A DNA stretch of 64,000 bases, taken from Azolla caroliniana (taxonomy: Eukaryota; Plantae; Polypodiophyta). Numbering within the stretch: position 1 is the first letter of the stretch; every line of letters begins with the position of its first letter. A program made the position numbers and the translations under genes. Below are positions 14,844 to 22,494 of the stretch, piece after piece. Below the pieces are notes generated by a model. The model had not been told where the DNA came from. It did not search any database and saw only the letters and a program-made list of their open reading frames with translations. The stretch lies in assembly GCA_043228905.1 (NCBI GenBank), contig JBHGNT010000006.1, positions 9,734,001 to 9,798,000 of the forward strand, written 5' to 3'.

Positions 14844-17056
14844 TCGACACATAATAGACAGAAAACAAGAAAACTATAATCACAATAAAATACCAACCAA
14901 CCATAATACAAGGAGAGGAGAAGGTGATTATATAGTCACCATCTCTCTAATTTCTCTTACTAGCTCTTGGGAAAGAGGTGGGGGCTTTAGTGAAGATGTT
15001 GGCAATTTAGAGGTTAGCGTTGATATGTTGCAAGTCAACATCTCTGGATAGGATGCACGCATTCTCATATAAAGTGGCAATGCACATCGATGTGCTTAGT
15101 CTGGGCCTGGAACACCGGGTTTCAAGCCAAATGAATTCTACTGAGGTTGTCGTTGTATAGGAGGATTGGATCAGCAATGTAGATGTTCAAATCCTTCAGT
15201 ATCCTTTTAAGCCAAATGACTTCACATGCAGCAACGATTGCGCCCCTGTATTCTGCCTCTATGCTCGACAATACGACTATCGACAACTTTTTGCTGCTCC
15301 ATGATATGGCTCCGCTGCCAAGGGAGAAGACGAATCCAGAAGTCAATCATCTATTGACTTTGTAGCCGGCCCAATTGGCATCTGTGTACCCCTCGAGTCA
15401 AATCGGCATTGCCAATTTGTAGAGGATGTTGTAACTCATAGTACCACTTACATACCTTAGCACTCGCTTGGCACAATCTAGACGAATGTCGCAAGATGTT
15501 TTAATGAATTGGCTAAGGAGGCCGATCGGATAGCTGATATCAGGTCGTGTAATGGTAAGGTAAATGAGGCTTCCGACTAGTTGCCATTAACAAGTTAGCT
15601 CGCACTCTTCTATGCCAAAGTCGACATCTAGTTTCAGGTTTCGATCAAGAGGGGTTGCCACAGATTTGCACTCAATCATTCGGAACTTATACATTAAGTT
15701 CAAAATGCAGTGTCATTGGGAGATAATGATGTTGTTCGAGGTCTCAATTACTTCTATACCAAGGACCCAGGGACTCCACTATATATAAGAAGGTTGTATC
15801 ACGTGCATTCATGATATATCATTTATAAACCCCTTATACGTATGCTTTTTACTATTTTAGTGACCTATTTGTAGAAAAAATATTAATAAAAATACCCCTT
15901 ATTACCAATGTTTTTTTTTATAACCACCCATTTTAAATACCCTTACATATAAATACATATACATGCACACATAGTTTCCAATCCTAGAAGGGATCAATGA
16001 ACCTCCTTACAATTCATGACTCGCAAAATTATGAATGAACATTAAACATCATATGCAAATTCCTAGAAATGCTTCATCAAGTACCATATAAATTGAAACA
16101 ACAATGTGTAAAGTACAAAGTAATGCACACACAATTAGGAAACATTACCCAAAAACACTAGAGGTATAACATATATAAGCCACATAGAAGTTTATTTTTA
16201 TAGTTTATTGAGACATATGAAGAATATAAAGTCACGATAAAAAACAATGTAATTTAAGAAAAAACAATCTTGAACTTGACATATATATCTCAAAGAGCAC
16301 ACATGGAACAATCCAAATGCATATCAATAATGAAATTACTAACAAATTAACATTATGTTTGGTTTCATGGATAGACTCATACGAAGCCACAACATTATTT
16401 TTTCTTAATCACATTGATCAAACGAATGACAATATATTTTATATTTCCATTTGAAATGTAATAATCTATGCAAATATTCTTACCCAAATCAAAATGAAAT
16501 AAAATAAATCATTTTGTTATTTCAATGTCTACTTAAAAAACATATTAAAATAAAGGTTACCCTCATAAATACAAACTATATATTTCCCGAGACATTATCA
16601 CCTTCATAGGCCTCTTGAAGCCTTGTGGTAGCTTAGGAGATATGGGAAAAAGGTTACAAGATATTCAATGTTCATTGTAATAGTGGACTATTTTGTATAT
16701 TGCCTCTAGCTACTCTAATTTTAATACCAATGGAGGATAATTTTATGTGGAAAAAAAATACAAACTATATAAATAGAAAACCCTAGGAAGTTGATTTTAG
16801 GCTATCAATTTCATATTGTTTCCATCTTCAATGTTGGACATGTATTATAACATATAACAACAAAGGCAATAAATCTTAATATACAAGGAAGTAAACCATA
16901 CCTTAAAGAAATCAGAAAATATATTCGGAATACCCTAGATTTATATTTGGTTTCTACTCTTTTCTCCTTTTCCTATTATAATAAAATAAAAAGCATGAAC
17001 ATTAAGTTACTTTAATATATACATACTATATATGTACATGTATGCAAGTATATAAT

Positions 17057-17575
17057 TCAAAACATCTTTAAACTATAAGTAACATTCCTACTTGCAATTC
17101 TTTGGGTTCTAGCCCAATTTTGTTTATCTTCTCTCGTAATATCACATTCCCTTAAGCCATGTGCATCGATGGAGATGTTATTATATACCAATGACACATG
17201 ATTCAATATGATCCATACATCTCTGATTACTAATTGTCTTGAGGGATTATCTAGTGCATTCACAAGTTTCTTTCCATTATGGATGAAATCTTGATCATGA
17301 AGACAACTTACCATATCATTATGCATTTTACTTGTGAAGATCCAACCATCCCAAGGCAACTTATATCTTAAGCATATGCTTGGGTTAAGTAAACTTGAAG
17401 CATAATCTTTCTTCTCCTACTATCTCCATCCGATGCATGTCCAAAATTTGGCCCAATACTTGTGGAGAGGTGTTTTTATCATAGAGTTTCCACTTCATTC
17501 CATTGGCATTTTACAAAATCTGAATAGAAGCAATTACATGTACATTGTACAACCAATACTAATGATATATGTTCC
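17057..17575 (-). pseudogene. P-like DDE transposase fragment
   Basis: LVLVVQCTCNCF..QWNEVE..GHASDGDSRRRKIML..(frameshift)..LHDQDFIHNGKKLVNALD..HGL..DITREDKQNWARTQRIAS; stops and a frameshift are present. Confidence 0.7.
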
Positions 17576-17579
17576 ATAC

Positions 17580-17924
17580 ATCATATATATTTGTATGTGG
17601 GATGCATGTGTGATGTGTGTTATGTTTCTATGTGTGTATGTATGCATATTGTATTGTATTATATGTATGGAATGTGTGTATATGTGTATATAGGTATTGC
17701 ATGTATTTTATTACATGTGTATGTAGGTATGTGCGTGTATGTACATAATGTATTGTATTTTATTAATTGCATTTATTGTATATATTATTGTATGTATGGC
17801 ATGTGTGATGTGTATTATGTTTGTATGTGTGTGTGTATGTTCCATACTGTCACGGACACACCATTGTGTCGTGACACATACAACATATATATATGTGTGC
17901 ATATGTGTATGTACATATATTCTA

Positions 17925-17969
<45 letters not shown>

Positions 17970-18000
17970 ATGTATGTGTGCATATGTATGTATTGTATTG
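17580..18000. repeat. Degenerate (TG/TA)n low-complexity tract
   Basis: Direct reading. Confidence 0.9.
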
Positions 18001-18039
18001 GCTCGTGACTAACTACTACCAAAAATTAAAGAGGGCAAG

Positions 18040-21000
18040 TGAGGGAATCGCGGGCGCGGACGGTGCAAGTCACTCAGCTGATGGCGCGTGCGATCTCCAC
18101 CGTCCAATCTGGATAAAAAGCTGACAACGTCTGTCACTAAGAGCCCGACTCTGACACAAGGAGCCCAACTCTCTGACAACCTCTACCACCAGGAGTCCGA
18201 CTCTGTCATAAGGAGCCCCGTTGTATGATAGCCTCTGTCACCAGGAGCTTGACCAACTATGAGTAGAAGCCTGACTCTCAAAAAAGTAAAAGTAATAAAG
18301 AATAATATAGCAATACAACAAAATAAAAATGAATAGGGTATTGGTTAGAGTTATCCCTAAGTTTTGCTAGGTTTATGGTTCAAATCCTTCTTCTTTTTAA
18401 TTCTTTCTCTTTGGTTTTTTTTCTTCTTTGATTACTTTCTTTATTAGGGTTTCAACATTTGGTTAGTCACTTTACACTTCATTTACATTTAAGGGTCGTA
18501 ATAGTGGTATTGAATTGTCATCTTTACAAGTTACAATGTGATGAATTCTTGTCTTTTGCAATTGTAGATCTTTTACCCTATGATCCTTCTAATCCGCATC
18601 TTGCCCTTAACACTTTTGCTTAAGTAAAATTAGCTCTTACCATTTGGGCTATGTTGATTGTCACTTTAATATGCAACTCACTCATGTTCCAAGTTAAGTT
18701 AACTCTCGTAATTTGGGCTTTTTCTTGATTCTTTGACTTTATACCATGGAATACTCTACCTATGGATCATGAGCCAAAACAAGAAGAAATGACACAATGA
18801 CACATTCACATTTTCAAACTCACTCGTTCACTCTATTCACAATAGTATGCAACTCACTCATGTTCCATGTAAAGTTAGCTTTCATAATTTGGGCATTTTC
18901 TTGGTTCTTTGACTTTCTACCATGGAATACTACTACCTATGGATCATCAATCAACACAAGAAGAAATGACACAATAACACATTCACATTTTCAAACTTGT
19001 AGGAAGCATTGGACACCACTTGGAATTTCCAAGGTTAAATAGACATAGCAAACAACTACTAAAGAGTACAAAAAAGAGTGGCACTTATAACGTTTTAATT
19101 CCACATGAAAGATTCCCTATTAGGGTGTAAAAATAAATTTCCATACATACATCCCTCTAGAGTACTAGTATCAATATACATAATACTACCCAATTTTGAA
19201 TATATACAAGGTATGCATAGAAAACCTTGCGGATGGTGAATATCATTCTCACATGCTCATCGGATGCAATAAGTATGATGCCGTACTAGAGAAGCATGAT
19301 ACTCAAATCCCACCAAGAAGGATGAGCATATAAGCACATTAATTACCTTCACACAATTTTTAACTACAAAATAGCAAACCCCCTTCACAAGGGATCACAT
19401 ATATGATGACATGTTTAATTGTTGAATGGAAAATAAGAATAGATTCTATTATACTCCATTCTCTCTTAACATTACTCAACTACAATATCTCATGATAATA
19501 GGACAAGTTTAGCATGTATTGAACTCATATGTTAGTATTCTTGTAGGATTGTCTATAAGATTGAATTGTGACCCTTTTTGAGCATTGAACAGAAAATCCT
19601 TGGTTTAACACACCCAAGATCCATACAGTAAATTAATGGCTATTCATATAAGAACATTGAGATATTACCATGATGGCCTTTTCAGTGCAGCTACATGTAT
19701 AACGTAACAAAGTTGTGATTTATGTTCGCTTCACAAAGAAATATAACAATGTGAGAAAAAATGACCAAAAAGGTGTCATATAAAGATGCCCCAATATGTA
19801 GTTTTAGTTCATAGATACAAACTTGTGTAAAAAAAATATACACAGAACATAATGATTTTTGAGGATTTCAAACAGAATTTTCAACATTAACCCTTATTTG
19901 AAACTTGAAACGTAATGCCATTGAAGATCTAGTGACATTTTTTATGCATAGAGATTGATAACCTATGAGACTATATTAACAATATGTATCATGGACTAAG
20001 TATAATAAAGTGATAATCAAATAGAAGGCTTAATCCAATATCTCAAACTCCTCAAGATCTTACTCAATTTAATGTTTAATAAAGACAAATATATGAAGGC
20101 ACAAGTTATTGGACTTTCCTATCAAAGAACACCAAACAAAACTATAAAACAGATCAGACTCCACATTGAGTCAGATACAACCAAAATGAGATTCAAATAT
20201 TGATTTTGATATTACAAAATCCATATACATCATCATCAGTTTTGGTTATACAAAAGTAGATCATCACCCTTAGAGTAGATCATAAGTAAATCCATTGGCA
20301 TAAGAGTGTATCATAAGTAAATCCATTGCATTAATCATATCCTCTAAACAAAATCCACTACATACAAAAACCGAAAAATCAAAACTTCATCCTCTGAACA
20401 GAATCAAAACTCATCAACATGTATACAAACAATTTCATATAAACAAGCTTTACATCCATGTTACAAATAAGAGGCAAGAAGAAGATACACAAGACGTATA
20501 GATGCCATATTACAAAATCAACCATTTACAACAGGCCACGATCATTCAAGTTGCCTTGGTTACAATATGCAAAAAAGGTTGGCAGCCTTGGTTCCAACGT
20601 ACTAAAAAGATTTATAGCATTGTTACAAAAAATTGATACAAAAAAGCTTGATAATACACCGATATCATATATTTTATGTTACGAAGTATAACATTTCCTC
20701 CGGTTAATATATGGGAAAGCCCAAAATCCGGCATGCCCATTTGGCCAACGTTTTCGAAGGAGCTCCACATCTTCGAATCTGAACCATTGCTCCTTACCCT
20801 ACACCAATGCACACATTTATTGCAGCTCTTACAATAACAAATGCCATTATTCAATGCTTGGGCCATACTTACAAAATCTGTTGAATCGGATCCAAATCAC
20901 CCGATGTCTTCAAGCTGACCGTCGGTGGATTATTCAATTGGTCACAATAGACTATTGGGCTCCTCCTCAACATTTCTTCATATTGATGTTGAAATTATAA

Positions 21001-21653
21001 CAATGCATTTATATGATACATTTGAAAAATGGAACAACTAAGTCTCTCACCATGTTAGAATATGGAACCTTGTGATCAAATGTAAATGAAAAGAAACCCT
21101 AAACGATGTAAAACATAAAAGTAACCATGAAAATACATACCTATTATTGCCTTCATTTTGATTGAATGTAGGAGGTTGGGAAGTGCTCGCTGGTGGAAAG
21201 TGGTGTGCCTCTCTGATTTTGGTGGAAAGTGGTGCTCCTCTTTGAATCTTCCCTCCAAATACCCTAAAACTCTCTTTTCAAAATAGGTTCAAAATGAGTG
21301 GTTCAGGGATTTTATAATAAGTGCTCATTAATAATGAACGAGGCTCCTTTTGACAGAGTCGGGCTCTTGGTGACAGAGGTTGTCAGGTAGCGGGGCTCCC
21401 TTTGACAGAGTCGGGCTCCTAGTTACGAAGGTTGTCAGACAACAAGGCTCCTAGTCGGGCTCCCCAATAAGTGACGATTTCTTCGCGCGTTTTTTTTCCC
21501 CACATCGGACGGTGCAAATCGCATGTGCCCTCGGCTGAAGTGTATTTTATAAAGTGTATTTTATTGGACATCGGGGTAGTTTGGTAAATTTGGAACTTTC
21601 AGGGGCATTCTGGTAAATAGACGAACTTTCAGGGGTATCCCGGTACTTTTCCC
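18040..21653. mobile_element. MULE-like non-autonomous element with long subterminal inverted repeats; left terminus missing
   Basis: 18070-18280 is inverted at 21340-21540. The right end reads GGGAAAAGTACCGGGATACCCCTGAAAGTT on the - strand (Mutator-type TIR). Internal tandem duplication of about 177 bp at 18661-18997. Confidence 0.6.
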
Positions 21654-22494
21654 TATATAAAATATGTTTGTAAGAATGTGTAAGTATATATGTAAATTTG
21701 TAATATGTAATATGCATATATGAATGTCAATATATATGGTTGATTCTCCTGAAAATATCCTTTCATTAGTTATAAACAATTGTTACAAGAATCTTTAAAA
21801 AAAAACAGTTGTTACAAGAATGTTGACCTATCGTCAAGTTTCCCTTAGTATGTTACACTCTTCCTTGGGTCCCAATCCCTAAAGGATAGATAGTACATAT
21901 GGTAATATATATTTGTATATATATTTATGTTTAATCAATATGCATGTATAAATGGGTGTAGTGTTTATTTTCAAATCTTTATTAATACCCTTATATATAC
22001 ATTTTGTATATCAGTGATTAATTTAAACCCCTTTTGATGAACTCATGTGCTATCATACAATTTTTGACAGTGAAGCCCCCGGGACCAAGGAAGTAATGGA
22101 GCTCCGTCATATCTTTCATTTCGAATCGACTGAAGAGGAGCTTCTTGGTGTTATTGATATCGGCAATGTGCTCTCCTTCAATGACCAACTCGTCAACATA
22201 TATTATAATGAATAGATGTCCTCTAGAATCGCTCCAAATGAACAGGGAATTGTTAGATTTGAACATTTTGAAGCTTGCTTGAGGATGTAGAGAGAAGCTT
22301 TTCGAGTTGGCATATAACAGTCGAATGCGTACTCAACTTGAAGTCGGGTGGTTGTACCATGTACACCTCTTCTTCTAATTAACCTTGAAGAAAAGTGTTC
22401 TTAGAAAAGAACAAGAAAAAGATGATGAAGAAGAAATTGCACAAGGAGACAGAAAGAGGAGCAGACAAACAAGGAGCGGATGAAGATAGACAGG

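Follow-up and report, generated by a model that had tools for sequence, protein, structure and literature searches.

The closest described counterparts of the element presented here are the Drosophila P element transposase and vertebrate THAP9 (PDB 6P5A/6PE2; Pfam PF21787, PF21788, PF21789 and PF12017). The P element enzyme uses GTP as a cofactor and makes a donor cut staggered by 17 nt, its GTP-binding residues being D528, K385, K400, V401, S409, F443, D444 and N447, and THAP domains are restricted to animals (PMC7776569). In regard to land plants, P elements are absent from two reviews of superfamilies with terminal inverted repeats (TIRs), which recognise six or seven of them (PMC9033089; PMC10741241). 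Likewise, a 2025 screen of 1,007 plant genomes, in which P, Kolobok, Novosib and Zisupton were sought with Pfam profiles, reported only seven other superfamilies as recently active (PMC12973397). Here we describe an insert of 6,318 bp in the fern Azolla caroliniana, located in a stretch of 64,000 nucleotides (assembly GCA_043228905.1, contig JBHGNT010000006.1, positions 9,734,001 to 9,798,000), which is referred to as the window throughout. An earlier reading of the window, made from the sequence only, had taken this insert for a P-element-like DNA transposon.

In P elements the transposase also binds internally, at sites some 40-50 bp away from each end; Yuan and Wessler are said to have described in 2011 a terminal motif of the CA(N)RG type for them, and their TIRs reportedly measure 31 bp. 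The terminal motif of hAT elements is of the YARNG type. Target duplications of KDZ/Zisupton and Novosib elements are 8 bp long, and KDZ and Kolobok elements are common in fungi. Set against these systems, the insert in the window is very probably a non-autonomous, deleted copy of a TIR DNA transposon, and the DDE transposase of its family is built like that of the P element. The family to which it belongs is judged to be a deeply divergent P-like lineage in seed-free plants.

Insertion site and boundaries of the element

The element extends, by our reading of the sequence, from position 15766 to 22083 and interrupts a Copia-type reverse transcriptase. It is flanked by an exact direct repeat of 8 bp, ACCAAGGA, and bounded by inverted ends of 15 nt that agree at 12 of the 15 positions, namely CCCAGGGACTCCACT reading from 15766 and CCCGGGGGCTTCACT reading inward from 22083 on the minus strand (coordinates in Table 1). 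The left junction (15758-15780) reads ...TATACCAAGGA/CCCAGGGACTCCACT... and the right junction (22069-22094) ...AGTGAAGCCCCCGGG/ACCAAGGAAGT.... When 15766-22091 was removed by a script, joining 15765 to 22092, a single open minus-strand frame was obtained (...MTELHYFLGIEVIETSNN... / ...KDMTELHYFLGIEVIETSNN...), and the right flank matches the Copia-type reverse transcriptase model RVT_2 of Pfam (33.3 bits, E 4.8e-08).

Taken alone, an 8-bp duplication combined with a 12/15 inverted repeat is only mildly unlikely by chance, as 0.15 such combinations are found per shuffled window and three in the real one, two TA repeats included. The boundaries are certain because the Copia frame is restored and because independent copies stop at the same terminus. 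Three copies on public metagenome contigs (L010, L011 and L013) are 89% identical to 15766-16582, and their similarity to the window ends exactly at the CCC terminus, with different flanks in every case. The sequence-only reading was thus correct about the split reverse transcriptase, the exact 8-bp target duplication and the 15-bp TIRs starting CCC(A/G)GGG. Between its ends the insert is AT-rich and largely non-coding, and the only stretch with a coding signal, some 500 bp of the minus strand, is split by stops into two frames.

The L013 copy likewise adjoins Copia-type integrase and reverse transcriptase sequence (L013 6834-7934). A target preference for Copia cannot be claimed, because the window and L013 are the only two cases.

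The transposase remnant and its protein family

The peptide motifs quoted in the sequence-only reading are all present on the minus strand. GHASDGD, the motif around the second catalytic Asp, lies at 17422-17442, QDFIHNGKKLVN, with the D-x2-H..KK..N pattern, at 17258-17293, and EDKQNW..QRI just downstream of the latter; a pair of stops and a frameshift separate the first two. A word search recovered one relative, protein P0001 on a short ENA metagenome contig (L001), with a DNA identity of 93% over the remnant only. An exhaustive HMMER search started from P0001 then yielded 712 proteins at E <=0.001, 193 of them at E <=1e-10, and many of these relatives are 1,000-1,500 residues long. In an alignment of 24 long members, AEDET, SDGDxRRR, DQDxIHxxKKxxN and GSDCCExxFS are invariant or nearly so. 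Likewise, D292, D412/D414, D464-x2-H467 and E651 (numbering of P0019) are invariant or at least 90% conserved in alignment A3.

Pfam models offered little help in classifying these proteins. The window pieces, P0001 and the open reading frame (ORF) of L013 gave no match to the P-element models PF21787, PF21788, PF21789, PF12017 and PF12596, and this covers the search of the translated remnant with hidden Markov models that the sequence-only reading had proposed. The best P-type match was to PF21787, the model for the N-terminal part of the RNase H domain in P-type transposases; it was found in one of the 24 members (P0002), with 18.7 bits against a cut-off of 24.6 (E 0.0022), and the same model reached E 0.1 in an ORF of L001. 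Models of other superfamilies gave nothing at E <=1: this applies to the hAT dimerisation domain, DUF659 and DUF4371 (PF05699, PF04937 and PF14291) in the 24 members and the L013 ORF, and to the MULE, Kolobok, CACTA, Plavaka and KDZ/Zisupton models. The claim that the motifs fit neither hAT nor MULE is supported, and none of the best profile matches is to hAT, MULE, Kolobok or KDZ/Zisupton transposases.

Outside the catalytic core, the N-terminal block contains three invariant Cys residues in the arrangement C-x9-20-C-x2-C, followed by a long helix, and the fern copies also have C2H2-like motifs. At the other end of the protein, a block of the form SKDRLxRV ... GRVxRM is conserved in most long members, including the fern type. 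Some marine members, among them P0067 (residues 1066-1119; L003 4606-7977) and P0261, carry a C-terminal Tudor domain resembling that of PTM/DIR17 (PF21743, E 9.7e-10). From these sequence features, the C-terminal module, whether Tudor domain or conserved block, may be a chromatin-targeting module.

Fold of the core

The fold was predicted with AlphaFold2 for a family member rather than for the window fragment, from residues 200-688 of P0019 and an alignment of 40 rows, and the model reached a predicted local distance difference test (pLDDT) score of 92.2 and a predicted template modelling (pTM) score of 0.90. The top match in Foldseek was the Drosophila P element transposase, 6p5a_A (E 3.2e-09, template modelling (TM) score 0.59/0.64), followed by Transib/RAG1 with a TM score of about 0.44 and by Hermes with 0.24. 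VIA, which is independent of Foldseek, returned the same structure with a Z of 29.0, aligning 393 residues at a root-mean-square deviation of 4.9 and 14% identity. This alignment spans residues 149-566 of 6p5a_A, comprising the helix-turn-helix, RNase H and insertion domains, and the runners-up were RAG1 (10.9), Tn5 (8.1) and Hermes (8.1).

By this alignment, the model has the arrangement of a P transposase, in which a helix-turn-helix precedes an RNase H-like domain that is interrupted between beta5 and alpha4 by a large helical insertion, the GTP-binding domain of P. Searches of the ESM Atlas point in the same direction: by shape, THAP9/P clusters were found at TM scores of 0.70-0.81, together with an unnamed, mostly Basidiomycota cluster at 0.90, and a search by language-model features with the fern-type protein returned named clusters that all belong to P/THAP9 families (scores 0.91-0.95). 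As predicted by the model, the transposase of the family has the P transposase architecture, at a distance that is beyond the reach of current sequence models.

Termini and target duplications across the family

The sequence-only reading had proposed that other copies with CCC(A/G)GGG ends be collected, and these were obtained from L010, L011, L013, L017 and further loci, giving 14 aligned ends from nine loci. All 14 have CYCRGGG in place of CA, as the same reading had described for the window copy, and positions C1, C3, G5-G7 and the AC at 13-14 are invariant (CYCRGGG...AC). Most of these ends, both ends in the window among them, also contain a CACGTGCGTTCA-like box at +33 to +46, in which only the central TG is invariant. 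By analogy with the internal sites of P elements, we infer that this box is a putative transposase binding site.

The distant member L017, with a core identity of about 34%, provides a complete element of 6.1 kb, whose TIRs of 29/30 nt start with CTCGGGGGGGTCACTCC and which is flanked by an exact 8-bp target duplication, GTTTTCAT. In L022 an 8-bp duplication, GTTACAGC, fits the sequence, with homopolymer runs leaving 6-8 bp possible. Target duplications of other copies are thus exactly 8 bp in one case and compatible with 8 bp in the other. TIR length differs within the family, from 15 nt in the window to about 30 nt in L017. The two ends seen in L018 have no matching duplication. An inverted repeat around the gene in L003 was also considered as a pair of element ends, and nothing convincing was found.

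According to the mechanism that these observations suggest, the enzyme would recognise the CYCRGGG ends and probably also the CACGTGCGTTCA-like box that lies some 35 nt in from each end, cut the element out, and make target cuts staggered by 8 bp.

Fuller copies and the probable origin of the defective window copy

Scanning of metagenome contigs with a core alignment of eight closer rows gave 80 loci, four of which (L009, L010, L011 and L013) belong to the same element family as the window copy. The main ORF of L013 (1833-5201) is intact and codes for 1,122 residues with the motifs VEDET, SDGD, DQDFIHNGKK and GSDGAEIFFS. An upstream ORF of 270 residues (967-1779) is probably the first exon of one spliced gene with the main ORF, judging by the sequence; the two ORFs were searched separately and not joined. 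L010, L011 and L013 are 99.4-99.9% identical to each other, their open stretches measure 1,137-1,151 aa, and their 3′ flanks differ, the similarity being lost exactly at CCCGGGGACTCCACTATA.... Because such near-identical copies have different flanks, at least three recent insertions took place in the plant-associated DNA of those samples. With L084 and L085 included, the apparently intact copies of the family have different flanks and share 98-99.9% identity; the L013-type protein falls in a 90% cluster of 58 member sequences. Outside the window copy, the family therefore looks recently active from its sequences.

The window copy is, judging by its alignment to L013, a defective, internally deleted and non-autonomous derivative, and a dead one. 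Its remnant, 17061-17563, corresponds to residues 465-632, approximately, of the 1,122-residue ORF and lacks the first catalytic Asp and the Glu. In this respect the earlier description of a transposase remnant is borne out by the motifs and by 94% nucleotide identity to L013, with the reservation that only about 500 bp of coding sequence is left. The first deletion removed 2,437 bp (L013 787-3223; on the 17563/17565 side, next to a repeat region) and the second 1,431 bp (L013 3728-5158), with a 4-nt microhomology, TGTT, at its junction. The loss of these 2.4-kb and 1.4-kb blocks cost the copy the first catalytic Asp and the catalytic Glu, and because of these two deletions relative to L013-type copies it is unable to move itself. 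The deletions could have arisen when the repair of gaps left by excision was interrupted, a route shared with defective P and Ac/Ds elements, and any later movement of the window copy would have been possible only through transposase supplied in trans by full-length copies. In being a defective derivative it resembles KP or Ds elements.

Further defective copies were also seen. L086 (5984-8336) lacks L013 3707-5248 and is cut at 2368, and L001 has its own breakpoints, its last 70 nt or so being the reverse complement of the preceding sequence, which is probably an assembly artefact.

Classification and alternative explanations

The comparison with P/THAP9 shows both likenesses and differences. 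Shared are the fold over about 390 residues (Z 29), the D, D, E triad, the D-x2-H in the insertion domain, the 8-bp target duplication, internally deleted defective copies, and a conserved box a few tens of bases inside the ends. On the other hand, identity to 6P5A is only 14% and Pfam P models stay below threshold; a Cys-rich C-x9-20-C-x2-C module stands at the N-terminus where P has the THAP finger; the protein, with 1,000-1,500 residues, is longer and has an extra conserved C-terminal region; and the hosts are ferns, liverworts and a brittle star, beside Atlas look-alikes that are mostly fungal. The P-like reading is supported for the fold, the target duplication and the anatomy of the element, and the evidence stops short of strict membership in the P superfamily as its models stand at present. 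The assignment to a P-superfamily lineage made in the sequence-only reading stands as far as the fold, the 8-bp duplication and the D/D/D-x2-H/E residues are concerned, and fails on the Pfam threshold, the THAP domain and the P-type terminal motif.

Several observations weigh against a P-like classification. No Pfam P-element model reaches its gathering score in any member tested, and a profile of the 24 long members, run against all PDB sequences, found no transposase. The THAP domain that had been suggested for an intact copy gave no match at E <=1 in the 24 members or in the L013 ORFs, and for a model of the N-terminal block (pLDDT 74) the PDB yielded no match. CYCRGGG stands at the ends in place of the CA type, and the TIRs measure 15-30 bp. 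None of L013, L084, L085 and L086 yielded the 5′ end of a full-length copy, so that the right terminus is known from the window copy only. The sequencing runs that contain parts of the element come from five coded organisms and from leaf or plant metagenomes, none of them recorded as RNA. Finally, Kolobok, KDZ/Zisupton, Novosib and Dada transposases are without a solved structure, and a fold search cannot weigh the family against them.

This last point bears on the explanation that the family belongs to one of those superfamilies and resembles P only as its nearest solved relative. In 2017, no similarity to Pfam domains could be detected for the catalytic domains of Kolobok, Novosib, KDZ and Dada (PMC5751038), and the present family is likewise unrecognised by Pfam. 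The Atlas look-alikes include unnamed, mostly Basidiomycota clusters with a TM score of 0.90, and Kolobok in particular has a wide and patchy eukaryotic range that includes fungi and algae, as well as the D/C-x2-H signature that is common to P, hAT, MuDR, Dada and Kolobok (PMC9587614). However, Kolobok elements have TTAA duplications of 4 bp and 5′-RR..YY-3′ ends (PMC9587614), and are excluded because the present family has 5′-CC..GG-3′ ends and duplicates 8 bp of target sequence other than TTAA. Neither the KDZ model nor CxC domains were found, an exclusion of KDZ/Zisupton that rests on sequence models and Atlas neighbours, and Plavaka and CACTA are likewise without a match. Novosib and Dada, too, are indicated by none of the sequence models and Atlas neighbours. 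As the named Atlas neighbours are all P/THAP9, both by features and by shape, and the match to the P transposase runs over 393 residues with the insertion domain included, we regard membership of such a superfamily as unlikely.

An origin within the hAT superfamily (Ac/Ds, Hermes), the classic cut-and-paste family of plants, deserves attention since hAT elements also make 8-bp duplications, have a D/C-x2-H in a large insertion domain and produce deletion derivatives, and since P and hAT sit next to each other among the clades of transposases with an RNase H-like fold (PMC3985635). Both the duplication and the D-x2-H motif are present here. However, the fold match to Hermes is weak (Z 8.1 and TM 0.24, against Z 29 and TM 0.6 for the P transposase), the hAT dimerisation domain, DUF659 and DUF4371 went without a match as described above, and the ends are CYCRGGG, not of the YARNG type, which makes a hAT origin highly improbable. 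Equally far-fetched is the explanation that the TIR element and the transposase fragment are unrelated, another transposon having captured a piece of a P-like gene. It would agree with the short coding part and with the lack of any counterpart for 18021-22083, more than half of the insert, in the fuller copies. However, L013, L010 and L011 show the same order and orientation for the terminus, for 1.1 kb of non-coding sequence on the 3′ side, for the coding piece and for the repeats upstream of it, and the terminal motif recurs in distant members whose genes are complete. For the 3′ half of the element, these alignments already refute capture.

Within the P-like reading, a more specific proposal is that the family represents a separate sister lineage of P/THAP9, eukaryote-wide and of superfamily rank, distinguished by CYCRGGG ends, by a DNA-binding module other than THAP and by a subterminal box of the CACGTG type. 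Such a lineage would have been inherited vertically in land plants since before the split of ferns and liverworts, would still be transposing in at least one fern-like host, as copies at least 99% identical with intact ORFs suggest, and would have been missed by Pfam-based surveys. We put this forward tentatively, giving it somewhat less than an even chance.

Host range and phylogeny

Named relatives of the L013 ORF core, all of them hypothetical proteins, were found in the fern Adiantum nelumboides, the liverworts Riccia sorocarpa and Calypogeia fissa, the brittle star Amphiura filiformis and a EukProt protist, and none has a precomputed P-type Pfam domain. Core identity is 37-50% for P0204, P0205, P0029, P0247 (Riccia sorocarpa), P0210, P0268 (Calypogeia fissa) and P0227, the last being the Amphiura filiformis protein XP_072023023.1 with 38%. 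One family member was located on a TARA Oceans contig.

A quick maximum-likelihood tree was built from 94 core domains; it is unrooted and many of its rows are unlabelled. The window's family is joined with three Adiantum rows at a support of 99 in the Shimodaira-Hasegawa-like approximate likelihood ratio test, and the fern and liverwort rows fall together with unlabelled ones in a group of 29-32 rows (88 and 98). The one animal row, two protist rows and the protein of the TARA Oceans contig are placed apart from it, in a group of 62 rows (98). This distribution leans towards an old plant lineage, that is retention, rather than a recent transfer from animals.

Our literature search, which did not extend to Repbase, found no catalogue entry or paper on P-like elements in ferns, bryophytes or plants. 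It may be that plant surveys do not list P-type elements because the family is invisible to standard domain models; with a P fold and every Pfam threshold missed, it shows how Pfam-based screens can overlook P-like elements. Taken by itself, the window copy is an unremarkable, dead derivative. If the classification of the family is true, a superfamily-level group would be added to the plant mobilome, and the P-type mechanism would be extended beyond animals to ferns and liverworts. Furthermore, seed-free plants, for which few tools for transposon tagging exist, would gain a candidate for an active cut-and-paste element, and the family would provide a natural test for an ancestral origin of the GTP requirement seen in the P transposase.

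Sequence features of the window copy

The coordinates of the element, of its flanks and of the segments shared with fuller copies are given in Table 1.

Table 1. Features of the element copy and its insertion site, in window coordinates
Feature	Position	Strand	Basis
Left copy of the target site duplication, ACCAAGGA	15758-15765		Identical to 22084-22091; removal of the insert and one copy gives the Copia reverse transcriptase frame
TIR at the 3′ end of the element (downstream of the transposase gene), CCCAGGGACTCCACT	15766-15780	+	Terminus CCCGGGGACTCCACT... also in L010, L011 and L013
Subterminal box CACGTGCATTCA, some 35 nt in from the terminus; candidate transposase binding site	15800-15811	+	Alignment of 14 termini
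3′ non-coding part of the element	15766-16582	-	89% identity over 827 nt to L013 5462-6279; also in L010 and L011
End of the transposase ORF and sequence just past it	16756-17068	-	82% identity to L013 5159-5477
Transposase remnant	17061-17563	-	94% nucleotide identity to L013 3224-3727; 87% amino acid identity to P0001
Region of short CA-rich repeats (TG-rich in plus-strand reading), which precedes the transposase gene in fuller copies	17565-18020	-	17565-17689 matches L013 594-786
Internal 3.4-kb segment flanked by inverted repeats	18074-21538		Arms 82% complementary over 102 nt
Second subterminal box, near the 5′ end, minus strand CACATGAGTTCA	22038-22049	-	Position and sequence like the opposite terminus and other members
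TIR at the 5′ end of the element (upstream of the transposase gene), minus strand CCCGGGGGCTTCACT	22069-22083	-	Seen in the window copy alone
Right copy of the target site duplication, ACCAAGGA	22084-22091		Direct reading; frame of the empty site
Host: interrupted Copia-type reverse transcriptase, resuming at 15757 and below	22092-22266	-	RVT_2 match; continuity of the frame

The inverted repeats that enclose the internal segment 18074-21538 are about 100-180 nt long. This segment may represent part of the 5′ region of the element or else a foldback-like insertion nested in it; a target duplication around it was looked for without success, and L009-L013 contain no counterpart. Its arms, at about 18074-18253 and 21337-21538, each contain two tandem subrepeats of 52 bp (18121-18224 and 21339-21442). 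Inside the segment there is also a tandem duplication of about 177 bp, with copies at 18661-18820 and 18837-18997 that are 89% identical.

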